NCBI GenBank assembly: GCA_950097015.1
Contig: CATNEN010000039.1
Location: 12,462,001-12,526,000 of the forward strand
Direction: 5' to 3'
Origin: Macrostomum hystrix
Taxonomy: Eukaryota > Animalia > Platyhelminthes
DNA: 64,000 bases
The position numbers were made by a program, and so were the translations under genes. Shown piece by piece: positions 25,319 through 64,000 of the stretch (its first letter is position 1; every line of letters begins with the position of its first letter). The notes beneath the pieces were generated by a model. It saw only the letters and a list, made by a program, of their open reading frames with translations. It was not told where the DNA came from and made no database searches.

Positions 25319-28300
25319 ATGACTGGTGCAACAAATCAGCAGCGCATGGTGCAGGTTTCAGTAGCCAATGCACGCAATGTATTAATTAGAATTGTTAAGA
25401 ATGAGCGTCGGCTACCGCATCCAGTCGAAATGGCCGAATTAATCAGCATTGAATGCGATTTGGAGTACAAATACAAGCCACTCAGTGTGGCCGTACTAAT
25501 TCAGAATATTAATGGGCAGCTTAGTAATGTGCGCTCCGCTTGCGTTGTGTTGCGCAACAAATTTAAGCAGCTACTACTGCCGCGTGAGGAGCGCAGCACG
25601 GATTGGTCAGTGCTAAAGGTTAGCTACTTGCGCTCGCTGCCCGAGGCGGCCCGACTGCTTGAAACCATCGGATTTGTACAGCGTGACGAGAATTTCATAG
25701 CCAATGAAGACCGAATCACTACAGAAGCTGTTGTCAATTTTCTGGTGGACATTTCTATGGTTGTTGAAGAATTGAATCTGTATTTAAGTGGCCAACACCC
25801 GCATATGGATGTCATCAAAGCTTATCTGTCTTCCACTCAGCAACAAAAGCGCGATGACCAGAAATTTAATAACTCCTTGCTAGAAGTGAAAAGTAATGAG
25901 TTGCCAGATCAGGTTGCTCTTCGCGGGATTGCTCGAAAAACTCAAGGTGCACAGCCTCCACTGCCGCCACCGAAACCAACGAAGCCGATTTCTCTGCGGT
26001 CATCGTCGCCGCCGCCGCCTACTACATCAGCTTCGGCTCCAGTTGAGCAGTCTCCACTGAAGAGGCCGGCTCAAGAACAGGTACAAAATTCGTCATCAGC
26101 GCCAATAGATTTATTGTGTGATCTGTGCGGCGATGAGCCAGTTGCTCTCGTATGCAACCACGAGGCCTGTCCCAGGCGCCACCTGTGCCTCGGCTGTGAC
26201 CAGCGCTGGCACGGCCACCCAAGCCGGCGCAGTCACAAACGCGTGGGCGCCGATACCGTTACTCTGCGACGCGAAGTTCCCATACCAGCAGTACAAGCAG
26301 CTACTCTTCCGCGGCTCAAGACCGCCTTGGAGCCCTTGGCTTCCGGTATTGGGCCGCGTCTGATCATGGCTCCCAGTGGAAAGAATTCCGTCAGCTATAT
26401 GTCTCAGTTGGGCTTATCAACGACGCATCAGCAAGAGGAGAAGCCGCAGCCGCAAAAAAGCGCAAATGATTGCGAGACAAAAACTTTAGAAGAAGAGAAG
26501 CAGAATAGTGATCAGCAGCCGAGAAAAGAAGCGATGGAAGAAACAGAAAAATGCCAAAATGAAGAACAGCAGATAAAAACGGCAGATCAAGACAGACAAG
26601 AACAAGAGAGAACACTAACTGAGATCGACGAGCAACTCGAAGAGCAGAGCCAGATAGAAGAGATAGCAACGGAGTTGACTGAGCAAACTCCAGTCTCCAG
26701 TCTCCAGTTTAAGGCGATGGACATTGCGGGAGATATTTACAATACCGGCTGCATAGCAAGCGGCAATTGGGACACGTCCGGCTTTGCCACAATGCCATCG
26801 CACAGAACTGCACCTGGCAGCTTCGGCGACAGAACCAGTCCAGGTGAGACGAGTCAAATCTTTAGGCCGCCAGTGCAGCAGCAGCAGCACCAGACTCTTT
26901 CTGCAGAAATGCGTGGTGGAGGCCACAATCTAGAGCACAATCGCAATGGGTTAAGTCGCCTCTCTCGAGTTGAAGCTAGCCTAGACTTGCGTCAAGAGGA
27001 GCTCTTGAACTACATGCAGTCTCTAAGCGTGCGTCCATGCCCGGATGTTCAGCTAGCTGCTGCGCCTTTATCAACAAGCTCTCCTACGCCGCCCGTCTCC
27101 GCATCGCCGCGGCCTGCAGCCCAGGCTGTCGCATCGACTATTATGGTACAAGTTAGTGAGGAAGAGAACGAGTCCGGGCGGGAGGATACATTTCACACGC
27201 CTACAGCTTCGCCGCCTCTTATTCGGCCTCGCCAATTGTTCACTTCAGTTGCCGCTGGCCAACCATCAGACCATGAAATGGCTGGGCCTATCTGGACATG
27301 CCCCAAATGCACTGTCAGAATACAACGCAGCGAGCTCAAGATAATCGCCAACAACCGCGCCATCTGTCCAGTGTGCAGCATGTCGTCGGATATTGATACC
27401 GTGAATGTAGATTTTGTGAATGTAGACCAAATCGTTACCAGCTTTGAGCAGAGCGAGCCGACTGCTACGTCTAGTTCTGTTTGGACTTGCCCAAATTGCA
27501 CCTTTATGAATGAAAGCAACGATTGCTGCCAGATCTGCGACTATCGTCAATCTTCATCTAAAACTGTGCTGCCGTCGGCTCCTCCTGCCGATTCCGTCGA
27601 TCTCGCCAATCGGACTGCCCGCCTGCTCGACCGACTACGCCGGGCGGATAGCAATACTGGCGACGAAATCGCCGATGCTCGCCACATAGCCGCGGCTCTA
27701 GCAGCCGATTCAAATATGTCGGACGCACAATTGACGGCCTGGGTGCGCTACGAATGGCCGCGTCGAGCTGAGCGCGTTCGCTTGGCCATCACTCGTGACT
27801 ATCTAGCGGACCGGCTCGACCTGTTGCCGCACTCAGACCAGTTGGCCTTCTCGCATCGCGAAGTATCCGAAGCCATGGCGGACTATCCGCACCTGTCCGA
27901 AATCGATTGCCAGCCAGTCGTGCAGGACCAGTGTATCCGGAGGCGCGAGCGGGTAGTCCTGGAGTTGGCTAGGCTTTATCCTAAAATGAGTAGCAGAGAT
28001 CATCACGCTGCGGCAGCCAAGGCTGATGGCAATCTGGAGCTTGCTCTCGACCATCTAAATGGTCTAGTGATGAATGACTACCTTGGTCAGTTGGCCGAAG
28101 TCAGTGACGGAGCTGACGCTGCGAGCAGCGTGACCTTCGACGGTACAGAGTTCTCATTGCACACCCTCATGGCTGAGCACGGCCTGCGCAGCGAAGCTGT
28201 TGCTAGGCGACTCACGATGCTGCACAACCACGAAGACTTCGGCCATCATCAGCTGGAGGATCTGGTTGAAGCTGTGAAGAATACGAACGCCATGCTAGAC

Positions 28301-30905
28301 GATGATAGCTGGTTAAACGAGGTTGGCGATTATCTAAACAAGGAGTGCCCAATCTGCGCCGAGCAGTACCCGCGCCATCGCTTCCTGGCCATGGTCTGCT
28401 GCGGCTGCGAGCTCTGCCAGGAGTGTTTCTACGGCTTTATCACCACCAACATGAAAGACATGCACATCACGCACCTGAACTGTCCGGTCTGCCGCTTTCC
28501 TAAAGCCAATGATGTTGAGAATCTGCAGCTGCACTTTCAGCACGTGCTGGCTCAGATTGCTCATTTTCAGCATCCGACATTGCGATTCGATCCGATGGAA
28601 GTTTTGCGAATGCAGGTGAGAAGTGCCTGTAAAAATAGTCATGGGTTACTCAGTCGTTTACTTCGTATGTAATAACGAGTTACTAATTGGGTGAAGAGCC
28701 ATTGGGATCTCAAAAAACAACAATTGTATCTCTGTCGCATGTAGCCCATCGTTGAGGGGTATCTTATCGTTAAAGTAGCCTATCGTTAATAAAGCGATAC
28801 CGTTAGCAAATCGTTCATATAGCATATCGTTCATGCTGCATATAATTACTTTAGAATATCGGTAATGTAGCATATCGTTACTTTAGAATATCGGTAATGT
28901 AGCATATCGTTAATTCAGAATATCGGTAATGTAGCCCATCGCTACTTCAGCATGTCGGTAATGTAGCATATCGTTACTTCAGAATAACAGTAATGTAGCA
29001 TATCGTTACTTCAGAATATCGGTAATGTAGCATATCGTTACTTCAGAATATCGGTAATGTAGCATATCGTTACTTTAGAATATCGGTAATGTAGCATATC
29101 GTTACTTCAGAATATCGGTAATGTAGCATATCGTTACTTTAGAATATCGGTAATGTAGCATATCGTTACTTCAGAATATCGGTAATGTAGCATATCGTTA
29201 CTTTAGAATATCGGTAATGTAGCATATCGTTAATTCAGAATATCGGTAATGTAGCATATCGTTACTTCAGAATATCGGTAATGAAGCATATCGTTAATTT
29301 AGAATATCGGTAATGTAGCATATCGTTAATTCAGAATATCGGTAATGTAGCATATCGTTACTTCAGAATATCGGTAATGTAGCATATCGTTACTTCAGAA
29401 TATCGGTAATGTAGCATATCGTTACTTCAGAATATCGGTAATGAAGCATATCGTTAATTTAGAATATCGGTAATGTAGCATATCGTTACTTCAGAATATC
29501 GGTAATGAAGCATATCGTTAATTTAGAATATCGGTAATGTAGCCCATCGCTACTTCAGCATGTCGTTAACTCAGCGCCGCATTTTTCTAATCCCAGGATC
29601 GCTTATTCGACTGGCAAGCAATGCGCAATCCAGAATTTGTGTGGTGCAGCCACTGCGGCACGGGCTTCGAGTTAGTCGCCGATAACGAAGAGCAGATGAG
29701 ATTCGCCTGCCATAATTGTCGTCGGGAAACCTGTCGCAAGTGTCGCAAGCCGTGGGAGAAGCAGCACAAGGGCCTCAACTGCGAGGACTTCGAGCGTTGG
29801 AAGCAAGACAACGATCCGGAATTCCAGACTAGAGGTGTGGCCTTCTACCTGCAGCAGAATGGCATCGAGTGCCCGGCTTGCCACTTCAAGTACGCTCTGG
29901 CCGGCGGCGGCTGCTTGCACTTCGTCTGCCGAATGTGCCGGGCCAACTTCTGCTCCGGCTGCGGCGGACTGTTCCAGCAGAACGGCAGCCAGGGCCTCGC
30001 CTGCCAGCATCCGCGCAGCTGCCTGTACTATTTGAGAGACTTCGAGATTGAAAGGTTGGAATTTCGTAATGGGTTAAAGCCTGTTTTTAACTCTTCTCAT
30101 GTTGTACTGTCCACTGTCTTGTGGTCCTTTATCAAACTGCAAACGCATAGTCCTTTAATTGGTCTCCGGTAACCCTCTGGTCCTTCAATTGTTCTTTAGT
30201 AATCCCTTGGTCCTTCAATTGGTCAGCAGTAACTCCCTGGTCCATCAATTGGTCAGCAGTAACTCCCTGGTCCTTCAATTGGTGAGCAGTAACTCCCTGG
30301 TCCTTCAATTGGTGAGCAGTAACTCCCTGGTCCTTCAATTGGTCAGCAGTAACCCTCTGGTCCTCCAATTGTTCTTCAGTAACCCTCTGGTCCTTCAATT
30401 GGTCAGCAGTAACTCCCTGGTCCTTCAATTGGTCTACAATGGTCCTTGGTCTTTCAATTGGTCAGCAGTAACTCCCTGGTCCTTCAATTGGTCAGCAGTA
30501 ACCCCATAGTCTCTAAATTGGTCCCTAGTAAGCACCGTTGTCTATGCATTCAATACCCTCAGACTCCAAAAGCTTCTTCAACTGCACAAAGTGGATTTTC
30601 GCTCCATTGTGCCCGACAACGAGGAGATTACTGAGTGCAAAGTCATGGAACAGAAGGAGACCACCGAGGGCCTGGTTGACGAGGCCTGCAGCCGTAAAGT
30701 CTCGCCAGGCCGGGCTAACCTGTGCGACAAGCACTACTCCGAGTATCTGGTGACGCTTATCAATAGGAACCGGTTGGATCCGGTTGAGATCATGACTCAG
30801 GCTGAGCTGGCCAATGTCTGCAGGCGACATAACATTGTCGTTGGTTCAACTGAGGCCAGCGAGGCTAGTTTGCGCCAAGCCATCTTGGCTAGGTGTCCAC
30901 TGTGA
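25319..30905 (+). CDS. RNF31: HOIP/RNF31-like RBR E3 ligase (LUBAC catalytic subunit), ~1365 aa; exons 25319-28615, 29597-30054, 30563-30905
   Basis: PUB-like N-terminus (...RLLETIGF); B-box CDLC..C...C...LCLGCDQRWHGHPSRRSH; NZF WTCPKC..CPVC and WTCPNCTFMN..CQICD; UBA-like AAAKADGNLELAL; RING1 ECPIC...CCGCELCQECF...CPVC; IBR FVWCSHCG...CHNC..TCRKCRKPWEKQHKGLNC; RING2 CPACHFKYALAGGGCLHFVCRMCRANFCSGC; LDD HPRSCLYYLRD...LQKLLQ...CKVMEQKE...DEAC...LCDKHYSEYLVTLIN...LDP. Splice phases are consistent. Confidence 0.92.
28845..29570. repeat. 32-bp minisatellite (TTCAGAATATCGGTAATGTAGCATATCGTTAC)n, ~22 copies, in HOIP intron 1
   Basis: Seen directly. Confidence 0.93.
30148..30525. repeat. 30-bp minisatellite (GGTCAGCAGTAACTCCCTGGTCCTTCAATT)n, ~12 copies, in HOIP intron 2
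   Basis: Seen directly. Confidence 0.92.
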
Positions 30906-32184: not shown

Positions 32185-34742
32185 ATGTGTGTTCCCCTGT
32201 GTACACAGCCGTGTGTGCTCAAGGTAGGTAGTCTTTTCAATTTCCTTTATATCTCTATAAGGCTGCGGGCACAGTCGCATCCTTTGATGACACTAGACCC
32301 ACAGCCAGCGAGGAGGCAATTCTGCCCATTTCGCTGACTCCTGAGCACACACGCACACAGTTGTGTACATCTGCCTTGACTTTCTCATCGTCAGACAGTG
32401 TACACTCGAACTGTGCCTTGAATTTTGGCCCTTAAGGGCGTAAATTGCACTAGAAGACTTATCTCCGCGGCTGCGCCCTAAATAAATGTGGCCTCGTATC
32501 GGAATCGAACTCAGGGACGTTGGTGCGAGAGTTAGACCACTCTGCCCCTACAGTTAAGTTAACTCTTCTGAGCCTTTTTAAGCTTATCGAGTCCTTCTGC
32601 CTTCTCGGCCATTTTATTTAAGTATTAGCCTTTTTGACCAGCTTTATTATTATGTTTTTTCAGGCCTACGCTCTGCCACAAGGGCAACCGCTGAGGCATC
32701 TCAGCCCGGCCTCCGCTCATTCAGAGCCGGAGATGTGCAGCTTCTGCGGCGATCATCCTGTCAGGCGCATCTGCAACGAGCCGGGCTGCAGTCGCAACCG
32801 GCTCTGCGTGGGCTGCAGCGACCTGTGGCACGGACATCCGAATCGGCGCAATCATAAAGTAGAAAATGTTGAATACTCCAACGATAAGAACGCGTCTTAC
32901 TATTACTGCGGTCAGGCCGAACGCGGGATAAGTCCCCGTGGTCAGTCAGTTGCTAGGCACCAGTCCCTCATGCAACCGAATCGTCAAACTTTCAATCGAC
33001 AGTCACCAGCTTTTTATGACGGAGAAACTGCCCTGGTGAGGGCCGGAAATTCTGCCGTGGTGCCAGCTTCTGCTGAAGGTGCTGAATGGTGTTGTCCTCA
33101 CTGTACCAGCATAAATTGTCAAGCCGGGCAGACCAGATCAAAAGCCGGAGAGCGCTTAGTCTGCAAGGTTTGTGGTAAGACATCCGACCCGAATACTCTC
33201 GACGCTAGAGGCCAGGTCTCAGCTCCGCAGCTTGTTGGGCAGTATCCAGTTCGTAATCAGCTTGTATTGACTCAGGAGCCGCTGTCTATGGACACTGGGC
33301 TGCAAAGGCAGCAAGCATTGAAACCAAGCCAGGCTGTTGCTGGCAGCAAAGCCGAGCAGCCAAAGCCTCTTGAACAAAGACAGGTGAACCGCTCATACGG
33401 ACTTCAAGTTGACGGGCATCCTAATGGACTAATGCAGCAGAATGCACAGCAGTCGCATATGCAGCAACCTGCACAGAATTACGCTACCGAAGTGTCAGCT
33501 TATAGTGCAGATCTTAAAAATCCTAACAATGTGCTACCTGAGTTACAGTCCGAGCAGGAGATGTCACCACAAAGCAGTTGCGCTGAGGCCGGGCCACGGC
33601 TAGATCTTAAAGAAAAATCTGAAGCAGTTTTGCCACTCAGGCAAGATACATTCCAGAAGATTTGCAGCTTAAACATTTCTGAGACTCACAAAGAACTTCT
33701 GCTGCGGCTTGTGCAGGAAAGAAAATTCAGTGCTTTCCACTTGACTGATTTGGTGAAGGCTGTTGATTCGTGTGGCGATCTCGCATACGATGATGAGTAC
33801 TTGATTGCCTACTTGTCTAACAAGTGTGAAAAGTGCAACAAGTCGGAACCCAGACACAAGCAGGTCTGCATGTCGCAGTGCTCGTGCCAGCTGTGCCTGG
33901 ATTGTTTTCATCAGTTTGTGCTGCAGTGCATTGGGTCGAGTCAAATCGCAGACCCGATTATTTTCGCCTGCCCAGGCTGTCATCTGCCGAAGCCGGAGGA
34001 ATTCGAAAAGTTTGCTACTCACATAAACTTTCTGAACTTGCAGTTGGAAGAAATAGGTAAAATTTGTAATTGGGCTGGCCCGGGTGTCGTTGAAGAATTC
34101 GACAGAGTGAGTGCCGAATGCTGTCGAGATATGCATATCAAGACAAAGAAGTACGCTAACTCACTCACTCCAACTCAGCCAGCGTTTGAGAAGCTTAATG
34201 GTCAAGGCTTTTCTTGTCCTGGATGTAGGACGCCATACTTCAGCTCGAAATCCATTGCAGATTCAATTTCGTGTTGCAGCTGCGAACTCAAATTCTGTCC
34301 CTGTTGCAATTTTGAGCGTTCGTTGTTAACTCAAAGCCACAGTGATAATTGTTTCTTCAGTTTGAAATCGATTAGCGTCTCTGTGTTGACCTTCGCATTG
34401 AAGGAGTCCAATATCCCTTTCGAAAAGATCGCCAGTCGCAAGAGCCATAAAAATGCAGCTGAAAAAAGTGGAACAAGACCTACTGATCAAAATGATCTGT
34501 GTAAAGCCATTGACTTCAAACAAGGGATCACTAAGGGTGGCGGCTTCCTTCGATGCATGGACCGAGTCTACAGGCGTACCAGTCTATGCGAGCGGCACTA
34601 CAAAGAGTATCTTGTGGATTTGATTAACGAGAACAAAATAAATGTTCAAAATGTTGATGTCTCCAACACGTGGCGTCTTAAGAACTATTTTGCTAAAAGG
34701 GTTCACGGCGTTAAAGATTTTCTTATGAAATGGGTTGCTTAG
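32185..34742 (+). CDS. HOIP paralog 2: B-box, NZF, RING1, no IBR, catalytically dead RING2, LDD; probable exons 32185-32223 and 32664-34742
   Basis: B-box CSFCGD...LCVGCSDLWHGHPNRRNH; NZF WCCPHCTSIN..CKVC; RING1 KCEKC...CSCQLCLDCF...CPGC; RING2-like CPGCRTPYFSSKSIADSISCCSCELKFCPCC; LDD HSDNCFFSLKS...CKAIDFK...LCERHYKEYLVDLIN. The first exon is tentative. Confidence 0.82.
32260..32548 (-). mobile_element. SINE family A in the putative first intron of paralog 2
   Basis: Reverse complement of the family consensus. Confidence 0.83.
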
Positions 34743-37518: not shown

Positions 37519-40263
37519 ATGGCCGCCGGGAACTCAGTCGATGAGGCGGACATGTGCAGGTTCTGCGGAGACGAGCCGGTAGCCCGCATCTGCTCGGCTT
37601 TGGCCTGCGCCCGCAAGCACCTCTGCGTCAACTGCGACAACATCTGGCACGGCCATCCGGACCGAAAAAATCACCGCCGGGATCCAGTTGATCCGCCGAT
37701 TAAAAATGGTCACAATGAGCCGAACCGCCCGGCCTCAGGTTCTGTCTGGTCCTGTCCGCACTGCACATTTGAAAATGTCTCCCAGGTGCTTTGGCAGCCG
37801 GAAGATAGGCTAATGTGCGACATGTGCTGCAAAACCATCGTCGGCCGGGAAGTATTGAAACCGGCGCCAGCTGGAATCAACGGAAATAGTTCTAAATCGC
37901 ATGTAAGCGAATCGGCCAATGATTTCATTGGAATTCCTTGTCCCATCTGCACTTTTCTGAACACATTAAAACATGCTAGGAGATGCGAAGTATGCGATGC
38001 CGAATTATCTGCAACGCCAAAGAAAAAGAAGCATGATCAGGCAAGTGAGACGGCTGTGTCTGGCACAAAGCGGCAGGTTCAGACCGAAAATTTTGAAGTC
38101 GGACAGCGCCACGTGAGACCGAAGGAAATTGATCGACAGCTTGCTGAACACTTGGGTCACAGAGAGCAGCAAATGATCGATGACCAGAAACATGAATACC
38201 AAAGCCTGCCATCTCATGCGTCTGAAGTGCGCGCTCGAGTGGAAGAGAAGCGGCCTAGAAGGGAATCGAACTCTGGCCTATCAGGCGATTCTCCAAGCGG
38301 GACGAATCGACGAGGCAGGGATCCGGAAGGAAAACATTCAAGAGTCGGGCCGGATTCATCAGAAGCAGTGAGTCTACCCTTGCAGCAGAAGCATGATCCC
38401 GAACAGTTGTATCTGCAGCAGTTGTCAGAGAAAGAGATGCAGGCACAGAGAGCTGAGTTGCTGGCCGTTGAGGAGGTTCTGAGGCGGCAAGAAGCCCAGG
38501 CTCAGCTGCGGCAGGCGGAGCAGCAGAGGCAGGAGCTTCAGGCGCGGCTGGTGGAGCAGGAGAGGCGAAGGTTTGAGATCGAAAAGCTTTTGCAGCGAGA
38601 GGCCAGAGAGAAGCAGCTGCTGCAGTCCATTGTGAAAGAGCAGGAGCGAGCGGAGAATGAGCAAAGGAGACGCGAGCAGCAGGCGAGAATTGAGGAAGAG
38701 AAACTTAAGAGAGCGGAAGAAGACAGACTGCAGAAGGAGAAAGAAGAAGCTGAGCAGAGTAGGCTGGAGAGAGAAGCGGCTGAGCAGAGGCGGCTGGTGA
38801 GAGAAGAGGCTAAGCAAAGGAGACGAGAGAAAGAAGAGGCTGAGCAAAGGAGGCGAGAGAAAGAAGAGGCTGAGCAAAGGAGGCGAGAGAAAGAAGAGGC
38901 TGAGCAGAGGAGGCTAGAGAAAGAAGACGCTGAGCAAAGGAGGCGAGAGAAAGAAGAGGCTGAGCAAAGGAGGCGAGAGAAAGAAGAGTCTAAGCAAAGG
39001 AGGCGAGAGAAAGAAGAGTCTAAGCAAAGGAGGCTAGAGAAAGAAGAGGCTGAGCAGAGGAGGCAGCAGAAAGAAGAGGCTGAGCGAAGGAGGCAGCAGA
39101 AAGAAGAGGCTGAGCAAAAGAGGCAGCAGAAAGAAGAGGCTGAGCGAAGGAGGCAGCAGAAAGAAGAGGCTGAGCAAAAGAGGCAGCAGAAAGAAGAGGC
39201 TGAGCGAAGGAGGCAGCAGAAAGAAGAGGCTGAGCAAAAGAGGCAGCAGAAAGAAGAGGCTGAGCGAAGGAGGCAGCAGAAAGAAGAGGCTGAGCAAAAG
39301 AGGCAGCAGAAAGAAGAGGCTGAGCGAAGGAGGCGGAAGGAAAAGGAGGTTGAGTTAAGGAGACGGAATGACTTTGCGCCTGAGTGGATGCTACTAGGGA
39401 AAGATGCGCCTGATCTTTGGGAGCTGACGAAAATTGAAACTGAGCGGTTGAGAGGAAAGAGAGAAAATGCTGATCGGATAAAGAGAGAAATAGATGGAGA
39501 CCGATGGAGAGACAATGAAGGATATGAAAGGCAGGCAATAGGGGGCGAACGCAGTTGGCAGATGTCAGCAGTATTATCTGCAGTGTCGGGAGCCAACAGC
39601 TATTCTGCTCGGGGTGGAACAGAGATCTCTACCCGACCGCAACGGACACTCAATTCTGTAACTGATGAAATGGCTATGAACGGAGTGCACGGTCCCGAAA
39701 GAAATTTCCCAGCAACGGACTCACAGCGCAACTACCGAGAGAATGAGCATTTCCACCTTGCATCTAATGCACCAGATGATATAAATGAGACTTACACTTC
39801 GGATGAGTCGGATGGATTTGAAGAACATTTTGATCTTGAGTCTGCGAAGCCAGCTCGAATTCAAGGCAGATCTACTCGGTCTGCTAAATCGAGTTGCTCA
39901 AAATTTCAGTGTGCTCACTGCGGCAAAACTAGAGTAATCAATGGTCGTATTGAAGCTGTTGGATTCGAGTGTTTTGGCTGCAACAAATACACGTGCAAGA
40001 TGTGCGATAGAGCTTGGGAAAATGATCATTGTGGACGATCTTGTTCAGAATTCGATAGCCTGCCAGGCAGGGCCGCTTCCTCGAAAACTTCTCCACCACA
40101 GCGTGTTGGTAGCGCTGCGCCTCGACATGCGAGTAAACAGCAGGCATTGATTCAGTGCACCAGGTGCCGACTAACAGTCGACACAAAGATGGTCAGATCA
40201 GATCAAGCCAATGCTACCTGTCGCAACTGTGGAGCTGTTCTGCATCTGCCAAGACCATACTAA
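37519..40263 (+). CDS. HOIP paralog 3 (914 aa): B-box, two NZFs, coiled coil plus ER/K single-alpha-helix repeat, IBR-like finger, terminal CxxC..CxxC
   Basis: CRFCGDEP...LCVNCDNIWHGHPDRKNH; WSCPHCTFEN..CDMC; CPICTFLN..RCEVCD; ~20 decapeptide repeats EKEEAEQRRR; CAHCG...CFGCNKYTCKMCDRAWENDHCGRSCSEF; CTRC...CRNC. Uninterrupted ORF. Confidence 0.85.
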   Translation: MAAGNSVDEADMCRFCGDEPVARICSALACARKHLCVNCDNIWHGHPDRKNHRRDPVDPPIKNGHNEPNRPASGSVWSCPHCTFENVSQVLWQPEDRLMCDMCCKTIVGREVLKPAPAGINGNSSKSHVSESANDFIGIPCPICTFLNTLKHARRCEVCDAELSATPKKKKHDQASETAVSGTKRQVQTENFEVGQRHVRPKEIDRQLAEHLGHREQQMIDDQKHEYQSLPSHASEVRARVEEKRPRRESNSGLSGDSPSGTNRRGRDPEGKHSRVGPDSSEAVSLPLQQKHDPEQLYLQQLSEKEMQAQRAELLAVEEVLRRQEAQAQLRQAEQQRQELQARLVEQERRRFEIEKLLQREAREKQLLQSIVKEQERAENEQRRREQQARIEEEKLKRAEEDRLQKEKEEAEQSRLEREAAEQRRLVREEAKQRRREKEEAEQRRREKEEAEQRRREKEEAEQRRLEKEDAEQRRREKEEAEQRRREKEESKQRRREKEESKQRRLEKEEAEQRRQQKEEAERRRQQKEEAEQKRQQKEEAERRRQQKEEAEQKRQQKEEAERRRQQKEEAEQKRQQKEEAERRRQQKEEAEQKRQQKEEAERRRRKEKEVELRRRNDFAPEWMLLGKDAPDLWELTKIETERLRGKRENADRIKREIDGDRWRDNEGYERQAIGGERSWQMSAVLSAVSGANSYSARGGTEISTRPQRTLNSVTDEMAMNGVHGPERNFPATDSQRNYRENEHFHLASNAPDDINETYTSDESDGFEEHFDLESAKPARIQGRSTRSAKSSCSKFQCAHCGKTRVINGRIEAVGFECFGCNKYTCKMCDRAWENDHCGRSCSEFDSLPGRAASSKTSPPQRVGSAAPRHASKQQALIQCTRCRLTVDTKMVRSDQANATCRNCGAVLHLPRPY

Positions 40264-50295: not shown

Positions 50296-50637
50296 TTAGC
50301 GATGTTGCTACTGACTACTATTCCTTAAAAAGGAAATTCCTTGCCTTGTTTAGTAGGCTGTCTACTAAAACCACGAAATTAATGTATGCAATAGATAATT
50401 TGCAGTCATTTTATTGCAATTAACTGATTTTTTCGATTTTCTACATTATAAATCTCAGTATTTTATTTTTTAGCAGCACTTCTTTTTTAAGCTATTTTTT
50501 GTACTTGTTTTAGATTTAATAAAATACAATTAAAAAAATACTTAAATTCAATGCAAATTCTTATCAATCAGTGCATCTATGTTGGGTTGAATTTATACCT
50601 CCTAGCTTTCCCCAAATTTAGTCTCCATTATCCATCA

Positions 50638-51872
50638 GTTTGGGTCACTGCTCAAGTTGGGTCACTGCTCAGGTTGGGTCACTGCTCAAGTTGGGTCACT
50701 GCTCAGTTTGGGTCACTGCTCACGCTGGGTCACTGCTCAGGTTGGGGCACTGCTCAAGTTGGGTCACTGCTCAGGTTGTGTCTCTACTCAGGTTGAGTCA
50801 CTGCTCAGGTTGGGTCACTGCTCAGGTTGTGTCACTGCTCAGGTTGTGTCACTGCTCAGGTTGGGTCACTGCTCAGGTTGTGTCTCTACTCAGGTTGTGT
50901 CTCTACTCAGGTTGAGTCACTGCTCAGGTTGGGTCACTGCTCAGGTTGTGTCACTGCTCAGGTTGGGTCACTGCCCAGGTTGAGTCTCTACTCAGGTTGG
51001 GTCTCTACTCAGGTTGGGTCACTGCTCAGGTTGGGTCACTGCTCAGGTTGTGTCTCTACTCAGGTTGAGTCACTGCTCAGGTTGGGTCACTGCTCAAGTT
51101 GGGTCACTGCTCAGTTTGGGTCACTGCTCACGCTGGGTCACTGCTCAGGTTGGGGCACTGCTCAAGTTGGGTCACTGCTCAGGTTGTGTCTCTACTCAGG
51201 TTGAGTCACTGCTCAGGTTGGGTCACTGCTCAGGTTGTGTCACTGCTCAGGTTGTGTCACTGCTCAGGTTGGGTCACTGCTCAGGTTGTGTCTCTACTCA
51301 GGTTGTGTCTCTACTCAGGTTGTGTCTCTACTCAGGTTGAGTCACTGCTCAGGTTGGGTCACTGCTCAGGTTGTGTCACTGCTCAGGTTGGGTCACTGCT
51401 CAGGTTGAGTCTCTACTCAGGTTGGGTCTCTACTCAGGTTGGGTCACTGCTCAGGTTGGGTCACTGCTCAGGTTGTGTCTCTACTCAGGTTGAGTCACTG
51501 CTCAGGTTGGGTCACTGCTCAGGTTGTGTCTCTACTCAGGTTGAGTCACTGCTCAGGTTGGGTCACTGCTCAGGTTAGGTCACTGCTCAGGTTGGGTCAC
51601 TGCTCAGGTTGTGTCTCTACTCAGGTTGAGTCACTGCTCAGGTTGGGTCACTGCTCAGGTTAGGTCACTACTCAGGTTGTGTCTCTACTTAGGCTGGGTC
51701 ACTGCTCAGGTTTGGTCACTGCTCAGGTTAGGTCACTGCTCAGGTTGGGTCTCTACTTAGGCTGGGTCACTGCTCAGGTTTGGTCACTGCTCAGGTTAGG
51801 TCACTGCTCAGGTTAGGTCACTGCTCAGGTTGGGTCTCTACTTAGGCTGGGTCACTGGTCAGGTTTGGTCAC
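50638..51872. repeat. 17-bp satellite (GGTCACTGCTCAGGTTG / TGTCTCTACTCAGGTTG variants)
   Basis: Seen directly; about 70 units with two interspersed variants. Confidence 0.95.
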
Positions 51873-51915
51873 CATTGTCCTGAAATTATTAGCCAATCTG
51901 TTATTTGTTTTCCAG

Positions 51916-54541
51916 TCGGAGCACGCGGAACTTGCCAGCAGTGTCGGCAATAATCCGAGCGATCGAAGCTCGTCAGAGAGGATTGCTACCGCTGGCGAGA
52001 GTCTAGACCAAGTTGGAACATCAAGTTCTTAAAGTTTCCATGTTAGTAGCTGCAGTAGCAGCAGAAGCAGCGGATTAGATAGTGACACCCTGCACCTAAG
52101 TAAGCAGCTTGAACAACAGCGGCGCAGAGTTGCTGACTTGGAAGACACTTTAAAGAGCGCTAAGCAACGAGTCGCTTTTGTTGAGAGGAAGCTGATATTC
52201 GAAAAACGAAGAGAAAGACATTTAAATGAGTTGATGCTCAAATGCGTGAATCGATCGAAACGTTCAAGAAGAAAGAAAAAAGCTAAACCAAAGATATTAG
52301 AGGCTGCTGGTTATAAACAAGTATCTTCCGAATTCGGAAACCAACAATTGGTAATTAATGAGAGTTCCGATTCCAGTTCCACTATTGTTGAAGCTGATAT
52401 GATCAGTGAGTTTAAAAGCAGAGGAGAAAACTTCTCTGAAAGTCCGCAAAGCCAGTTTTCGTCAGAAAGAAAAAACTGTATCACTGAGTCGGAGGCTAAA
52501 AAGGGGACGCCTGTGCGACATAACATTGAGAAGGGAAAAAACCGCCAAATATCAAGCAGAGACAGAGGCAGAGGCAGCAAGAAAGAGAAAAACAACAACG
52601 ATTACAGAAAGAGAGGGAGGAGCTAGAACTATTCAAGGAGAGAGAAAAAAAGAGCGATTACAGAACGAGAGACAAGGACAAGAGCGATTGCGGAAGGAGA
52701 GAGAAGAACAAGAACGGTTGCGGAAGGAGAGAGAAGAACAAGAACGGTTGCGGAAGGAGAGAGAAGAACAAGAACGACTGCAGAAAGAGAGAGAAGAACA
52801 AGAACGGTTGCAGAAAGAGAGAGAAGAACAAGAACGGTTGCAGAAAGAGAGAGAAGAACAAGAACGGTTGCAGAAAGAGAGAGAAGAACAAGAACGGTTG
52901 CGGAAGGAGAGAGAAGAACAAGAACGACTGCGGAAGGAGAGAGAAGAACAAGAACGACTGCGGAAGGAGAGAGAAGAACAAGAACGACTGCAGAAAGAGA
53001 GAGAAGAACAAGAACGGTTGCAGAAAGAGAGAGAAGAACAAGAACGGTTGCAGAAAGAGAGAGAAGAACAAGAACGGTTGCGGAAGGAGAGAGAAGAACA
53101 AGAACGACTGCAGAAAGAGCGAGAAGAACAAGAACGGTTGCAGAAAGAGAGAGAAGAACAAGAGCGATCGCAGGAGAGAGAAGAACAAGAACGGTTGCAG
53201 AAAGAGAGAGAAGAAGAACAAGAACGATTATTTAATAATCGGCAATCAGGTTTGAATGCTGTTCAAAAGCAGAAATGTTTCTATGACCAAGGTAAATCTA
53301 TTGTTTCAAGCAGAGCTGCCCAATTTGATTGCAACTCTTCCTTTTGCACCGTACCGGTGAAATGCTCTCACTGTGGCAGAGAACGGAACTATTCTGGTCG
53401 TATCGATGTTGTTCGCATAGAATGCGTATATCGTCTGTGCCTTCAAGCGACCTGTCTCAAATGTCGGAAGCCCTGGGAAGATGCACATGATTGCCAATCA
53501 AGCAAAGAAAATCTAAATAGCCGTATCTCTGGCTTATCCGAATACCAGACGCTCCTTCCTGAAAGCTTTTACAAATGTGCAGCGCACTCAGGATTTGTTT
53601 CGAAAAAAGAATTAAACTGTAACGAGCAGCTATTAAGAAAAGAAGAAAAAACTGAGCCATGGCGAAAGAGTAAAATGGAATCGCATCGACGAATTGATAA
53701 AACACAAGAGCGACTGCAGAATGAGCGAGAAGAACAGGAGCGATTTCAGGAAGAGAGAGAAGAACAAGAACGGTTGCAGAAAGAGCGAGAAGAACAGGAG
53801 CGATTTCAGGAAGAGAGAGAAGAACAAGAACGGTTGCAGAAAGAGCGAGAAGAACAGGAGCGATTTCAGGAAGAGAGAGAAGAACAAGAACGACTGCAGA
53901 AAGAGCGAGAAGAACAAGAACGACTGCAGAAAGAGAGAGAAGAACAAGAACGACTGCAGAAAGAGAGAGAAGAACAAGAACGACTGCAGAAAGAGAGAGA
54001 AGAACAGGAGCGATTTCAGGAAGAGAGAGAAGAACAAGAACGACTGCAGAAAGAGCGAGAAGAACAAGAACGACTGCAGAAAGAGCGAGAAGAACAAGAA
54101 CGACTGCAGAAAGAGCGAGAAGAACAAGAGCGACTTCAGAAAGAGAGAGAAAATCAAGAACGGTTGCAGAAAGAGAGGGAAGAACAAGAGCGATCGCAGA
54201 AAGAGAGAGAAGAAGAACAAGAACGGTTGCAGAAAGAGAGAGAAGAAGAACAAGAACGATTATTTAATAATCGGCAATCAGGTTTGAATGCTGTACACAA
54301 GCAGAAATGTTTCTATGACCAAGGTAAATCTATTGTTTTAAGCAGAGCTGCCCAATTTGATTGCAACTCTTCCTTTTGCACCGTACCGGTGAAATGCTCT
54401 CACTGTGGCAGAGAACGGAACTATTCTGGTCGTATCGATGTTGTTCGCATAGAATGCGTATATCGTCTGTGCCTTCAAGCGACCTGTCTCAAATGTCGGA
54501 AGCCCTGGGACGACGGGCATCGAGTTTCGTGCAGTGGATAA
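51916..54541 (+). pseudogene. Coiled coil-SAH-IBR-SAH-IBR unit, copy 1 (disrupted)
   Basis: Acceptor TTCCAG at 51910-51915; in-frame TAA at 52030 (AAA in copy 2); frame changes at 52533-52542 and at the A-run 52645-52651. (KEREEQERLQ)n blocks are each followed by IBR-like CSHCG...C...C..TCLKCRKPWE..H. Confidence 0.7.
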
Positions 54542-56607: not shown

Positions 56608-59036
56608 ATGTCAGACGGTCAGCACTGTCTCCAGCTGTGCCACCTCTGTGGCAGCCAGCCAGCCGTGTTCTCCTGCTCATCCGTGGACTGTCCCGATCGT
56701 CAGCTGCTGTGCGAAGCCTGCGACATCGACTGGCACGGACGCACAGAAGAGCGACGGCGGCATCGAAGGCAGGTGAGCCAGATTCTAGTATTTGTGCGGC
56801 TAGATTGTCCTAAATGCCATTTGTCTCTAGCGTCATTTTGTCAGATGCCATTATCTCAAATTCCATTGTGTTAACTGCTATAGTCTCTAGGACCATTATC
56901 TTCAGTGTCAGTATGTGAAATGCCATTGTCTCAAACTGAATTGTCGCAATGTCTCTGCTGTCTAACAATGAATCTAAGTCAGCAATTTAACTTTCAGATA
57001 CACCTGGCGGAGGCGGCCATGGTCTCGTGGAGCTGCACCCACTGCACATTCTCCACCAACCAGCGGGTGTTAGTTGCAACAGATCTACCTCAAACTCTAA
57101 TTTGCCAGCTGTGCGATGCTCATTGCGCAGAGATTCAAAGCGTTGGCGGCCTTCTCTGCTCAGTCAGAGTTGCCGGGCAGATCAGAAGTGACGCGGCTAA
57201 AATCGACCAACTGACTGCTCAGTTGAATGAGCTGAGACAGCAGCTGGCTGATAAGGAGGCTCAAGTGCAGAGAGCTGAGCTGGTTGCTGTTCAAGAGGCC
57301 GGTAGAAGGCTGGAGGCGCTGGCACTGCTGAAGAAGTTTGAGCATGAAAAAATCATGATAATGGCAGATGTTGACAAAGAGAGAACGCTGAAACAGGAAA
57401 CAGAGAACAGGCAGAGAGAGTTGCCGCAGAAGCTGGAATCGAACTCTGGCATATCAGGCGATTCTCCAAGCGGGACGAATCGACGAGGCAGGGATCCGCA
57501 AGGAAAGCATTCAAGAGTCGGGCCGGATTCATCAGAAGCAGTGAGTCTACCATTGCAGCAGAAGCATGATCCCGAACAGTTGTACCTGCAACAGTTGTCA
57601 GAGAAAGAGATGCAGGCGCAGAGAGCTGAGTTGCTGGCCGTTGAGGAGGTTCTGAGGCGGCAAGAAGCCCAGGCTCAGCTGCGGCAGGCGGAGCAGCAGA
57701 GTCAGGAGCTTCAAGCGCGGCTGGTGGAGCAGGAGAGGCAAAGGTTGGAGATCGAAAAGCGTTTGCAGCGAGAGGCCAGAGAGAAGCAGCTGCTGCAGTC
57801 CATTGTGAAAGAGCAGGAGCGAGCGGAGAATGAGCGAAGGAGACGCGAGCAGCAGGCGAGAATTGAGGAAGAGAAGCTTAAGAGAGCGGAAGAAGACAGA
57901 CTGCAGAAGGAGAAAGAAGAAGCTGAGCAGAGTAGGCTGGAGAGAGAAGCGGCTGAGCAGAGGCAGCTGAGCGGAGGCGGCTGGAGAGAGAAGCGGCTGA
58001 GCGGAGGCGGCTGGAGAGAGAAGTGGCTGAGCGGAAGCGGCTGGTGAGAGAAGAGGCTGAGCGGAGGCGGCTGGAGAGAGAAGAGGCTGAGCGGAGGCGG
58101 CTGGAGAGAGAAGAGGCTGAGCGGAGGCGGCTGGTGAGAGAAGAGGCTGAGCGGAGGCGGCTGGAGAGAGAAGAGGCTGAGCGGAGGCGGCTGGTGAGAG
58201 AAGCGGCTGAGCGGAGGCGGCTGGTGAGAGAAGAGACTGAGCGGAGGCGGCTGGAGAGAGAAGCGGCTGAGCGGAGGCGGCTGGTGAGAGAAGAGGCTGA
58301 GCGGAGGCGGCTGGAGAGAGAAGAGGCTGAGCGGAGGCGGCTGGTGAGAGAAGCGGCTGAGCGGAGGCGGCTGGTGAGAGAAGAGGCTGAGCAAAGGAGG
58401 CGAGAGAAAGAAGAGGCTGAGCAAAGGAGGCGAGAAAAAGAAGAGGCTGAGCAAAGGAGGCGAGAGGAAGAAGAGGCTGAGCAAAGGAGGCGAGAGAAAG
58501 AAGAGGCTGAGCAAAGGAGGCAGAATGACGTTGCGGCTGAGTGGATGCGACTAGAGAAAAATCAGCCTGATCTTTGGGAGCTGACGAATGTCGAAGCTGA
58601 GCGGTTGAGAGGAAAGAGAGAAAATGCTGATCGGATAAAGAGAGAAATAGATAAAGACCGATGGAGAGACAATGAAGGATATGAAAGGCAGGCAATAGGG
58701 GGCGAACGCAGTTGGCAGATGTCAGCAGTATTATCTGCAGTGTCGGGAGCCAACAGCTATTCTGCTCGGGGTGGAACAGAGATCTCTACCCGACCGCAAC
58801 GGACACTCAATTCTGTAGCTGATGAAATGGCTATCAACGGAGTGCAAGGTCCCGAACGACATTTCCCAGTAACGGACTCACAGCGCAACTACCGACAGAC
58901 TGAGCATTTCCACCTTGCATCTAATGCACCAGATAATATAAATGAGACTTACACTTCAGAGAAATCTGACGAGTTTGAAGACTTTTTGTCTTCAAAGCCA
59001 GCTCGAATTAAAGGCAGATCTTTAAAAGATCTTTAA
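56608..59036 (+). CDS. Chimeric B-box | NZF-coiled coil-ER/K SAH gene; exons 56608-56772 and 56998-59036, frameshift at ~57965
   Basis: LCHLCGSQPA...LLCEACDIDWHG...RRRH | IHLAEAAMVSWSCTHCTF...CQLC. From 57435 it is nearly identical to paralog 3 (38262-39873). The frame breaks within the repeat, so it may be a pseudogene or an assembly error. Confidence 0.7.
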
Positions 59037-60758: not shown

Positions 60759-63700
60759 TCGCAGCACGCGGAACTTGCCAGCAGTGTCGGCAATAATCCG
60801 AGCGATCGAAGCTCGTCAGAGAGGATTGCTACCGCTGGCGTGAGTCTAGACCAAGTTGGAACATCAAGTTCTAAAAGTTTCCATGTTAGTAGCTGCAGTA
60901 GCAGCTGCAGTAGCAGCAGAAGCAGCGGATTAGATAGTGACACCCTGCACCTAAGTAAGCAGCTTGAACAACAGCGGCGCAGAGTTGCTGACTTGGAAGA
61001 CACTTTAAAGAGCGCTAAGCAACGAGTCGCTTTTGTTGAGAGGAAGCTGATATTCGAAAAACGAAGAGAAAGACATTTAAATGAGTTGATGCTCAAATGC
61101 GTGAATCGATCGAAACGTTCAAGAAGAAAGAAAAAAGCTAAACCAAAGATATTAGAGGCTGCTGGTTATAAACACGTATCTTCCGAATTCGGAAACCAAC
61201 AATTGGTAATTAATGAGAGTTCCGATTCCAGTTCCACTATTGTTGAAGCTGATATGATCAGTGAGTTTAAAAGCAGAGGAGAAAATTTCTCTGAAAGTCC
61301 GCAAAGCCAGTTTTCGTCAGAAAGAAAAAACTGTATCATTGAGTCGGAGGCTAAAAAGGGGACGCCTGTGCGACATAACATTGAGAAGGGAAAAAACCGC
61401 CAAATATCAAGCAGAGACAGAGGCAGAGGCAGCAAGAAAGAGAAAAACAACAACGATTACAGAAAGAGAGGGAGGAGCTAGAACTATTCAAGGAGAGAGA
61501 AAAAAAAGAGCGATTACAGAACGAGAGACAAGGACAAGAGCGATTGCGGAAGGAGAGAGAAGAACAAGAGCGATTGCGGAAGGAGAGAGAAGAACAAGAG
61601 CGATTGCGGAAGGAGAGAGAAGAACAAGAACGGTTGCGGAAGGAGAGAGAAGAACAAGAACGGTTGCAGAAAGAGAGAGAAGAACAAGAACGGTTGCAGA
61701 AAGAGAGAGAAGAACAAGAGCGGTTGCGGAAGGAGAGAGAAGAACAAGAACGATTGCGGAAGGAGAGAGAAGAACAAGAACGGTTGCAGAAAGAGAGAGA
61801 AGAACAAGAACGGTTACAGAAAGAGAGAGAAGAACAAGAGCGATTGCGGAAGGAGAGAGAAGAACAAGAACAATTGCGGAAGGAGAGAGAAGAACAAGAA
61901 CGGTTGCAGAAAGAGAGAGAAGAACAAGAGCGATCGCAGGAGAGAGAAGAACAAGAACGGTTGCAGAAAGAGAGAGAAGAACAAGAGCGATCGCAGGAGA
62001 GAGAAGAACAAGAACGGTTGCAGAAAGAGAGAGAAGAACAGGAGCGATTGCGGAAAGAGAGAGAAGAACAAGAGCGATTGCGGAAGGAGAGAGAAGAACA
62101 AGAACGGTTGCAGAAAGAGAGAGAAGAACAAGAACGGTTGCAGAAAGAGAGAGAAGAACAAGAACGGTTGCAGAAAGAGAGAGAAGAACAAGAACGGTTA
62201 CAGAAAGAGAGAGAAGAACAAGAACGGTTGCAGAAAGAGAGAGAAGAACAAGAACGGTTACAGAAGGAGAGAGAAGAACAAGAGCGATTGCGGAAGGAGA
62301 GAGAAGAACAAGAGCGATTGCGGAAGGAGAGAGAAGAACAAGAGCGATTGCGGAAGGAGAGAGAAGAACAAGAACGGTTGCGGAAGGAGAGAGAAGAACA
62401 AGAACGATTGCGGAAGGAGAGAGAAGAACAAGAACGGTTGCAGAAAGAGAGAGAAGAACAAGAACGGTTGCAGAAAGAGAGAGAAGAACAAGAACGGTTG
62501 CGGATAGAGAGAGAAGAACAAGAACGGTTGCAGAAAGAGAGAGAAGAACAAGAACGGTTGCGGAAAGAGAGAGAAGAACAAGAACGGTTACGGAAAGAGA
62601 GAGAAGAACAAGAGCGATTGCGGAAGGAGAGAGAAGAACAAGAACGGTTGCAGAAAGAGAGAGAAGAACAAGAACGGTTGCAGAAAGAGAGAGAAGAACA
62701 AGAACGGTTGCAGAAAGAGAGAGAAGAACAAGAACGGTTGCAGAAAGAGAGAGAAGAACAAGAACGGTTGCAGAAAGAGAGAGAAGAACAAGAGCGATCG
62801 CAGGAGAGAGAAGAACAAGAACGGTTGCAGAAAGAGAGAGAAGAACAAGAGCGATCGCAGGAGAGAGAAGAACAAGAACGGTTGCAGAAAGAGAGAGAAG
62901 AAGAACAAGAACGATTATTTAATAATCGGCAATCAGGTTTGAATGCTGTTCAAAAGCAGAAATGTTTCTATGACCAAGGTAAATCTATTGTTTCAAGCAG
63001 AGCTGCCCAATTTGATTGCAACTCTTCCTTTTGCACCGTACCGGTGAAATGCTCTCACTGTGGCAGAGAACGGAACTATTCTGGTCGTATCGATGTTGTT
63101 CGCATAGAATGCGTATATCGTCTGTGCCTTCAAGCGACCTGTCTCAAATGTCGGAAGCCCTGGGAAGATGCACATGATTGCCAATCAAGCAAAGAAAATC
63201 TAAATAGTCGTATCTCTGGCTTATCCGAATACCAGACGCTCCTTCCTGAAAGCTTTTACAAATGTGCAGCGCACTCAGGATTTGTTTCGAAAAAAGATTT
63301 AAACTGTAACGAGCAGCTATTAAGAAAAGAAGAAAAAACTGAGCCATGGCGAAAGAGTAAAATGGAATCGCATCGACGAATTGATAAAACACAAGAGCGA
63401 CTGCAGAATGAGCGAGAAGAACAGGAGCGATTTCAGAAAGAGCGAGAAGAACAAGAACGACTGCAGAAAGAGCGAGAAGAACAAGAACGACTGCAGAAAG
63501 AGAGAGAAGAACAAGAACGACTGCAGAAAGAGAGAGAAGAACAAGAACGACTGCAGAAAGAGCGAGAAGAACAAGAACGACTGCAGAAAGAGCGAGAAGA
63601 ACAAGAACGACTGCAGAAAGGGCGAGAAGAACAAGAACGACTGCAGAAAGAGCGAGAAGAACAAGAACGACTGCAGAAAGAGAGAGAAGAACAAGAACGA

Positions 63701-64000
63701 CTGCAGAAAGAGAGAAGAACAAGAACGACTGCAGAAAGAGAGAGAAGAACAAGAACGGTTGCAGAAAGAGCGAGAAGAACAAGAGCGACTTCAGAAAGAG
63801 CAAGAAGAAGAACAAGAACTGTTGCAGAAAGAGAGAGAAGAACAAGAACGACTGCAGAAAGAGCGAGAAGAACAAGAACGACTGCAGAAAGAGCGAGAAG
63901 AACAAGAACGACTGCAGAAAGAGAGAGAAGAACAAGAACGACTGCAGAAAGAGCGAGAAGAACAAGAACGGTTGCAGAAAGAGCGAGAAGAACAAGAGCG
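60759..64000 (+). CDS. Coiled coil-SAH-IBR-SAH unit, copy 2 (runs off the window)
   Basis: Acceptor at 60757-60758; no premature stop at the site equivalent to 52030. After one -1 frame change at 61388-61397 the frame reads KQRQRQRQQEREKQQRLQKEREE...(KEREEQERLQ)~47-LFNNRQ...CSHCG...TCLKCRKPWEDAH. A 2-nt slip occurs near 63712. The upstream exon is not identified. Confidence 0.55.

Follow-up and report, generated by a model that had tools for sequence, protein, structure and literature searches.

Probable tandem array of HOIP-derived genes, intact and dismantled, in a macrostomid flatworm

A 64,000-nucleotide stretch of the Macrostomum hystrix genome (contig CATNEN010000039.1, positions 12,462,001 to 12,526,000 of the forward strand; the whole stretch is called the window below) carries a series of genes built from the modules of HOIP (RNF31). 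To our knowledge no enzyme other than HOIP is known to make head-to-tail ubiquitin chains, and in the animals studied so far we know HOIP as one gene whose control depends on partner proteins. We consider it probable that the series is a real tandem cluster of HOIP-derived genes, and we place the same good but incomplete confidence in the overall account of its genes, history and function given here. At its upstream end lies a full-length HOIP (gene A), which is followed by a predicted pseudo-ligase (gene B), a protein with a HOIP-type head, a rod and an IBR domain (gene C) and the units D to I.

Extent of the array and its full-length HOIP

Generic Pfam scans of the large open reading frames (ORFs) and of excised zinc modules returned almost nothing, with only the LDD of gene B scoring above its cut-off; the Pfam models for the small zinc modules of gene A also stayed below theirs. 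Because generic models missed most of these small modules, we built eight HOIP-specific profiles (PUB, B-box, NZF, UBA, RING1, IBR, RING2 and LDD) from domain slices of the HOIP of Macrostomum lignano, P0001 (1455 aa), and their homologues among 152 HOIP-family proteins, the return of a full-library HMMER search with the IBR-RING2 exon of gene A as query. The profiles were scanned against six-frame translations of the window and of the 20 kb downstream by which it was extended for searches. Profile E-values quoted here refer to this small database, and positions beyond 64000 are extended coordinates.

Significant profile matches were confined to the plus strand between 25364 and 68380, apart from weak matches in an unrelated Ariadne-type RBR (RING1-IBR-RING2) gene farther downstream. 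The six-frame scan gave no HOIP-profile match in the 25 kb upstream of the array or on the minus strand, and no minus-strand genes were recognised within the array. An earlier note on this DNA had described a head-to-tail, plus-strand array of HOIP modules, and the profile scan bore this out, with the motifs lying where that note had placed them. The array continues for about 4.5 kb past the end of the window, as unit H runs to 64466 and a further unit, I, lies at 66488-68450. Proteins encoded in the window have their best matches in M. lignano, at 41-84% identity, as expected of a related macrostomid and not of M. lignano itself. Genes in the region are intron-poor, and minisatellites are numerous (Tandem Repeats Finder). 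The count of "about nine" derivatives given in the note holds for ORF blocks. It does not hold for genes, since the head and tail of F, and likewise G and H, may each be one gene; we place the number of genes in the array between about six and nine, among which D, H and I at least look non-functional. The profile domain maps agree with the proposal that HOIP has been split into heads, pseudo-ligases and IBR rods: within the array RING1 and LDD are restricted to A, B and D, and the profile scan found no RING1 or RING2 match in C, F, G or H. The catalytic RING2 motif GGCxHF, which had been ascribed to the first gene only, was found once in the array by motif search and alignment, at 29906-29923 in gene A.

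Gene A has three exons on the plus strand (25319..28615, 29597..30054 and 30563..30905) that together form the ortholog of M. lignano P0001, and its profile matches comprise all eight domains (E 1e-14 to 2e-85). Exon 1, within an ORF of 1117 codons, encodes PUB (25364-25813, E 2e-48), a B-box (26111-26242, E 1e-14), two NZFs (27275-27571, E 8e-25), the UBA region (27617-28288, E 2e-85) and RING1 (28325-28558), the last of which also matched RNF31 in the PDB (E 4.5e-10). Exon 2 encodes the IBR (29603-29821) and RING2 (29819-30049, including the motif in the form GGCLHF) and matched the RBR of human RNF31 in the PDB with an E of 1.2e-43. Exon 3 encodes the LDD (profile E 1e-38; 99.3 bits against Pfam PF18091, cut-off 23) and ends in a stop codon at 30903-30905. 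The M. lignano protein is 55-58% identical to exon 1 and 84% identical to exon 2 by tblastn. Exon junctions were placed by homology to P0001, the exons having been searched singly and the compatibility of reading frames checked in scripts. They fall between LRMQ and DRLFDW (donor CAG/GTGAGA at 28616) and between FEIER and LQKLL, with good GT/AG sites, and the second intron splits an Arg codon. Both introns contain minisatellites, one of 32 bp in 23 copies in intron 1 (28824..29569) and one of 30 bp in intron 2 (30150-30523).

Gene A holds every part and residue known to matter for the synthesis of Met1-linked chains. Its GGCLHF aligns with the GGCMHF of other HOIPs, and its LDD keeps the Arg-Asp pair which, in human HOIP, we take to position the acceptor ubiquitin. 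As the RING2 Cys/His motif and the Arg-Asp pair are both kept, A is most likely a builder of Met1-linked ubiquitin chains. In layout it resembles vertebrate HOIP/RNF31 and Drosophila LUBEL (PUB, ZF/B-box, NZFs, UBA, RING1-IBR-RING2, LDD, catalytic Cys and His). Unlike a single-copy HOIP, it is one of at least six copies in the genome with the catalytic motif. All Macrostomum-type copies (in A, the region 29819-30054) also lack a Cys-bearing insert of about nine residues between RING2 and the LDD helices, which both of the non-Macrostomum HOIP-family proteins aligned possess.

Genes B and C, their orthologs and the wider family

Gene B (32652..34742, plus strand) is a single ORF of 702 codons, in which 32652 is the first ATG and the true start is uncertain. 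By profile it begins with a B-box (32730-32858, E 3e-12) and an NZF (33081-33203, E 2e-4); a linker of low complexity and then conserved helices lead up to RING1 (33804-34046, E 1e-14), in which all eight zinc ligands are present. Directly after RING1 come a RING2-like zinc scaffold (34191-34373, E 4e-5) and a remnant of the LDD with its core helix (34551-34643, E 3e-7), which scored 26.9-31.8 bits against PF18091, above the cut-off. There is no IBR profile match between 34046 and 34191, and the PDB alignment passes from RING1 to RING2. At the position of the catalytic GGCMHF, B has SIADSI and its M. lignano ortholog P0003 has STADHI, the Cys and His being replaced in B, and the Arg-Asp of the LDD segment "...YLRD..." is Lys-Ser in B. 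Since the catalytic Cys and His, the IBR and the acceptor-binding Arg-Asp are all lost, B is predicted to be a HOIP-derived pseudo-ligase that is unable to form a ubiquitin thioester. The domain and structure check suggested in the earlier note also came out in favour of HOIP, as the HOIP profiles match B and an AlphaFold2 model of its residues 380-702 (mean pLDDT 74) retrieved HOIP chains in Foldseek (HOIP RBR, E 2e-10; TM scores of 0.52-0.57 for RING2-LDD and 0.79 for RING1). All significant matches of the model were HOIP chains but one, a weak match to RNF216, another RBR protein (E 7e-3). HOIP homologues were present in the alignment from which the model was folded, and this biases the comparison.

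Gene C (37519..40263, plus strand) is a single ORF of 914 codons. Its product has, in order, a B-box (37549-37680, E 3e-14), NZF1 (37747-37827), NZF2 (37933-37995), a coiled coil, an ER/K rod, a linker, an IBR-like domain (39904-40059, E 5e-8) and a C-terminal knuckle of the form CxxC-x17-CxxC. The B-box is 57% identical to that of the M. lignano HOIP and 55-58% identical to that of gene A, and the two NZF motifs, one long-looped and one short-looped, mirror NZF1 and NZF2 of A. Against solved structures the only credible match of the C tail was the IBR of human RNF31 (2CT7; E 1.6e-4). The tail aligned with the HOIP IBR profile at 97.9% in hhalign and its closest IBRs are those of the Macrostomum HOIP family; it shows the C6HC zinc pattern as well as resembling HOIP IBRs, with the Pfam IBR models below cut-off. 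The knuckle is conserved in M. lignano. We considered whether it could be a remnant of RING2; its RING2-like scores were non-significant and the idea stays speculation. As a separate observation, human CYLD, another enzyme of the linear-ubiquitin pathway, has a B-box to which that of C (37555-37698) showed a weak similarity below significance (E 0.37).

Two features of C recur in other units. The NZF motif W-x-C-x2-C...C-x2-C with its T-F pair for ubiquitin contact is present in the heads of B, C, F and G and is kept in the M. lignano orthologs; against PF00641 these NZFs scored 11-16 bits (cut-off 27), gene A likewise, and several copies have a longer loop than the canonical one. The rod of C, in which E, R and K make up 69% of residues 395-615 with a periodicity of 10 residues, is encoded by a 30-bp repeat in 21 copies (38735-39362; Tandem Repeats Finder). 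The ER/K rods of C, F and G have 64-70% E+R+K and regular 10-residue repeats, their assignment being one of composition and periodicity.

Both derivatives have full-length counterparts in M. lignano. B corresponds to P0003 (43% identity, 99% coverage), and C corresponds to P0156, to which it aligns along its whole length, IBR and knuckle included (41% identity). Conservation is concentrated in the zinc modules: in B the B-box is 73% identical between the two species, RING1 62%, the dead RING2 50% and the LDD 53%, and in C the B-box is 71% identical, NZF1 64%, the IBR 53% and the knuckle 59%, against 21-38% for the linkers of both. The same domains are better conserved in A (RING1 84%, B-box 85%), so the derivatives evolve faster. 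The long ORFs of B and C have stayed intact, with an overall identity of about 41-43%. Supporting the antiquity of this part of the array is the fact that the consecutive M. lignano models PAA67417, PAA67416 and PAA67415, on one contig of 343 kb, are the orthologs of A (partial, 720 aa), B and C. From this synteny we conclude that the A-B-C order is ancestral and that assembly error does not account for the core of the array. On a second M. lignano contig PAA73088 is a HOIP and PAA73089 a B-like gene. The three consecutive models share the name stem Mlig012393 (g1, g2, g3), which hints at one precursor transcript; the g-numbers are undefined in the source paper, which makes this a lead only. 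The GenBank models of the M. lignano assembly come from a genome-guided RNA-seq transcriptome (PMC5730564), and, because the models are RNA-seq-derived, the orthologs of A, B and C are transcribed in M. lignano.

The array is one part of a larger family. In a census of the 220-Mb, 42-contig assembly, a search with the IBR-RING2 exon found five further copies in a tandem array on another contig (C11:5371155-5404589), which by genome search and profiles contains at least nine genes. Among these, one is a full-length HOIP, four are short RBR-LDD genes that carry GGC[LM]H, two resemble B in having a dead RING2 and no IBR, and two bear heads. The statement in the earlier note that HOIP is typically single-copy does not extend to this genome, with its second array and five more copies of the catalytic motif. 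The Pfam LDD model detected nine loci in the genome, namely A, B and seven on C11, and a lone B-box/NZF gene was found on a third contig (C41:3272677-3273405, minus strand). Genes of the C11 array have syntenic M. lignano orthologs (PAA90424, PAA90426 and PAA90427). We count about twenty HOIP-derived loci in this flatworm and M. lignano, in at least three places. Genome searches for OTULIN and for the SHARPIN PH domain (PF16764) gave no match, a blank that does not show absence, and a UBAN search gave weak, sub-threshold matches only.

Phylogeny was consistent with a HOIP ancestry of these copies. In a tree of the RBR-LDD region of 69 proteins, in which P0001 stands in for A, all 14 Macrostomum-type rows fell on one side of a branch with SH-aLRT support of 92, and P0001 grouped with the other full-length HOIP. 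B and P0003 were sister to two dead C11 copies with support of 100, and B, D and the two C11 copies make up a dead clade of four. The expectation that the paralogues would group with the neighbouring HOIP is therefore upheld for the Macrostomum copies as a whole and not for B, which is nearer to the dead C11 copies than to A; in an approximately unbiased (AU) test a tree with B as sister to A was not rejected (p-AU 0.33). A tree of the B-box (51 columns) was also tried and was unresolved, with D and F on very long branches. It did not rule out one origin and says nothing more.

Units D to I, neighbouring genes and repeats

Unit D (44020..45277, plus strand) is a decayed copy of B, as judged from its identity to B, DNA alignment and profiles. 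It has a RING1 (44422-44664, E 5e-13), an LDD remnant (45122-45208, E 2e-4) and a degenerate B-box, and its amino-acid identities to B are 63% and 45%. No ATG precedes the B-box, a deletion of 11 nt relative to B shifts the frame near 44666, after RING1, and the alignment shows that an internal deletion takes out the RING2 core. As synonymous sites between B and D are saturated while the rate of nonsynonymous substitution (dN) in RING1 is 0.25, D is an old duplicate that was probably inactivated late. Unit E (46418..47623, plus strand) encodes a coiled coil preceded by a divergent NZF-like motif (46640-46669); across 189 residues it is 24% identical to the NZF exon of G. We found no B-box exon in E and no Pfam family, and its 5' end abuts a copy of an interspersed repeat; E may be a fragment or pseudogene.

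The head of unit F (48548..50295, plus strand) has a B-box exon (48548-48706; B-box 48569-48697, E 5e-7), a candidate intron (48707-49857) that holds an interspersed repeat, and an exon with an NZF and a coiled coil (49858-50295; NZF motif 49888). In silico, the head introns of F, G and I have in-frame GT..AG junctions. The F tail (52403..54541, plus strand) is an open frame of 712 codons in which two ER/K rods alternate with two IBR-like domains (53360-53494 and 54389-54532; E 2e-5 and 6e-5 in unit F). Its first Met is at codon 425, with none in the 424 codons before, and for this reason the tail either belongs to F as a downstream exon or does not form a gene by itself. The candidate IBRs of the F and H tails gave 2CT7 as a weak top PDB match (E 0.15) and 14.6 bits against Pfam IBR_1 (cut-off 27), and their ligand spacing is altered.

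Unit G (56608..59036, plus strand) is a chimera. Its head, with a B-box exon (56608-56772; B-box E 8e-10), a candidate intron (56773-56997) and an NZF/coiled-coil exon from 56998, is 95% identical to unit I, and its body (57428-59021) is 88% identical to C (38257-39873). To judge from these identities, the body from 57428 onwards is a conversion or recombination tract from C-type sequence. The frame of G changes inside the ER/K repeat (56884-58047 and 57957-59036), and a stop precedes the position of the IBR in C. Unit H (61258..64000 in the window and to 64466 in extended coordinates, plus strand) is a duplicate of the F tail, with an ER/K rod, an IBR-like domain (63044-63181, E 4e-4), a second rod and a second IBR-like domain past the end of the window. 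It is read in three frames against the single frame of the F tail, a difference due either to genuine frameshifts or to indel errors within the repeats. Unit I has an intact head, and stops and frameshifts interrupt its tail.

The pairs F-tail/H and G-head/I-head were produced by a tandem segmental duplication of about 9 kb (50489-57438 and 59041-67366), with 90-95% identity in self-blastn. Each duplicated segment has, in order, a non-coding 17-bp minisatellite (73 copies at 50635..51872; second copy at 59236-60715), the ER/K-IBR-ER/K-IBR frame, some sequence between genes, and then a B-box exon and an NZF exon. As the earlier note had described, the array mixes members that are intact, decayed or chimeric, with D frameshifted, I broken in its tail and G chimeric.

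Upstream of the array lies a protein kinase gene (16433-18136, plus strand; Pfam Pkinase, E 2e-23). Downstream, about 10 kb past the window end and on the same strand as the array, lies the Ariadne-type RBR gene (IBR, IBR_1 and Ariadne domains; L002:13-2997 and L001:6631-7641), which is unrelated to the HOIP family by profile score, and a RagA/Gtr1 GTPase gene stands between it and the array. The interspersed repeat mentioned above is about 370 bp long, its copies are 70-87% identical, and it is found between or inside several units of the array, for instance in the candidate F intron and where E has its 5' edge. Copies lie at 32232-32547, 40880-41263 (minus strand), 46259-46605 and 49259-49700 in the array region, and at 4334-4537, 5777-6157, 10261-10584, 11226-11444 and 15821-16297 upstream of it. 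This repeat may have helped the rearrangements of the array. Rfam and tRNA scans found nothing beyond one tRNA-like element upstream of the array (18927-18996; Rfam tRNA 31.8 bits; ARAGORN finds no tRNA). Copies related to the repeat that carries it lie at 48842-49113, 54810-55064 (minus strand) and 64738-64992 (minus strand, extended coordinates); it is possibly a tRNA-derived short interspersed element (SINE). Regular minisatellites at 7697-7950 (12 bp, 21 copies), 12879-13556 (16 bp, 42 copies, 100% identity), 13948-14285 (26 bp, 13 copies) and 31266-31741 (16 bp, 30 copies) yield long spurious ORFs in all frames. Finally, the top match of the library search with the IBR-RING2 query was a sponge protein, P0004 (Ephydatia muelleri, KAL5514972.1), in which a RING1-IBR segment is repeated, giving five query-matched stretches, before a single RING2. 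These repeats reflect either tandem exon duplication or an artefact of annotation or assembly.

History, possible function and meaning

We propose that tandem duplication with loss of domains had produced A, B and C before the lineages of this species and M. lignano parted, and that the A-B-C order would have been kept since then with selection acting on the zinc modules. Units D to I would have come later, through unequal crossing-over and gene conversion between copies rich in repeats, with several of them now decaying. The birth-and-death expansion envisaged in the earlier note needs correcting for A, B and C, which do not stem from a recent local burst: they are older than the split from M. 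lignano and syntenic there.

As to function, we tentatively read B and C, from their sequences, as non-catalytic companions of the HOIP enzymes that would modulate or scaffold chain building, a reading to which we give somewhat less than even confidence. The shared B-box/NZF head would send A, B and C to the same ubiquitin-marked sites. There B would occupy E2 or recruitment sites, binding an E2 through RING1 without passing the ubiquitin on, and would serve as a brake, a competitor or an allosteric partner. C would link two ends that bind ubiquitin, its stiff ER/K helix of about 220 residues keeping them apart. In the vertebrate complex LUBAC the regulatory and scaffolding places are held by HOIL-1L and SHARPIN. 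It is conceivable, if unlikely, that A, B and C form a flatworm-specific linear-ubiquitin machine in which B and C take these places and all three are trans-spliced from one precursor. In M. lignano the precursor of A, B and C would then be separated by spliced-leader trans-splicing, and the many other HOIP-derived genes would supply different versions of the machine.

Some of the evidence weighs against the account given here. The NZF assignments in C, F and G were made by motif and orthology and lie under the Pfam cut-offs, as they do in A. The RBR-LDD region of B is on a long branch, and its sister relationship to the dead C11 copies is possibly due to long-branch attraction. Ratios of nonsynonymous to synonymous substitution (dN/dS) on the young pairs are based on 2-25 substitutions, too few to inform. 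The frameshifts of G and H fall in 30-bp repeats and could be assembly errors. This last point bears on whether F to I could be an artefact of assembly, that is, a false duplication or a mis-joined haplotype around the minisatellites and 30-bp repeats. The tandem blocks are 90-95% identical and bounded by repeat arrays, and the frame changes are located inside repeats, as such an error would predict. A divergence of 5-10% and unequal repeat lengths are high for alleles, however, and each copy was found only once elsewhere in the 220-Mb assembly, so we regard an artefact as very unlikely for F to I; the A-B-C core is confirmed independently by synteny in M. lignano. Another explanation is that all units except A are neutral pseudogenes or fragments whose long frames are by-products of the ER/K repeats, which are open in several frames and on both strands. 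In its favour, D has a frameshift and no start, I is interrupted in its tail, the frame changes within G and within H, the first 424 codons of the F tail contain no Met and E lacks a B-box exon. This explanation suits D, H, I and perhaps E and G. It does not suit B or C, which keep uninterrupted ORFs of 702 and 914 codons and whose full-length M. lignano orthologs, 41-43% identical, are conserved chiefly in the domains and have gene models built from RNA-seq; for the array as a whole we give it little credence.

Explanations that accept the units as functional, but in other roles, were also weighed. The non-catalytic copies could be immune decoys that mimic the HOIP surfaces hit by pathogen effectors (RING1 and the NZF head), with birth and death driven by an arms race. 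The leucine-rich repeat (LRR) domain of the Shigella effector IpaH1.4 is bound to human HOIP RING1 in PDB 7V8G, the paralogues have diverged from M. lignano faster than A (RING1 62% in B against 84%; B-box 71-73% against 85%), and duplication, decay and chimerism are ongoing in the array. B and C are, however, stable, one-to-one syntenic orthologs with conserved domains, more like a housekeeping partner, and no dN/dS above 1 was seen (in young pairs with few substitutions), the sole value near 1 being in a linker; we judge a decoy role unlikely. A part in the germline or in reproduction, outside linear-ubiquitin immunity, would make the array a fast-evolving family like the Ariadne-1 expansion of Caenorhabditis, a precedent for lineage-specific RBR expansion with germline roles, and a published study of Macrostomum is said to have found that reproduction-related genes evolve fast. 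Speaking against such a role, the M. lignano ids are not in the supplements of a three-species flatworm reproduction RNA-seq study or of a neoblast/germline re-analysis, and the retained NZF, IBR and LDD scaffold consists of ubiquitin-handling parts, which makes it quite improbable in our view.

Pseudoenzyme paralogues occur elsewhere in the ubiquitin system, such as OTULINL/FAM105A beside OTULIN and UEV proteins beside E2s. Like these, B keeps the parent fold and zinc scaffold without the catalytic residues, adjoins the active gene and is conserved between species; unlike them, it also lacks a whole domain (the IBR) and the acceptor-binding pair, and it belongs to a dead clade of four members. 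We know of no described pseudo-RBR derived from HOIP. The ARI-1 family of Caenorhabditis is reportedly a lineage-specific tandem RBR expansion whose copies remain RBR ligases as far as known. One RBR subfamily has expanded in both cases, and the copies described here differ in having been dismantled to heads, pseudo-ligases and IBR rods. Myosin VI/X and caldesmon have ER/K single alpha-helix (SAH) spacers, and the rods of C, F and G are like these spacers in composition and 10-residue repeats, as known here from sequence; we found no described SAH between a B-box/NZF head and an IBR. Our literature search, over 8 million papers, found no paper linking HOIP, RNF31 or LUBEL with flatworms and no description of HOIP paralogue expansions or HOIP-derived pseudo-ligases, the nearest precedent being Caenorhabditis Ariadne-1, and the M. 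lignano gene ids were absent from the main texts and two supplement sets in that search.

In this family two full-length enzymes stand beside short RBR-LDD enzymes, conserved dead enzymes and head-rod-IBR proteins, which makes the family a natural dissection of HOIP. It raises the questions of what the HOIP head, RING1 or IBR does alone and whether pseudo-ligases tune linear-chain signalling, and these are directly testable because M. lignano is amenable to RNA interference and transgenesis. If the copies are regulators or decoys, they would represent a new layer of control for the linear-ubiquitin pathway.

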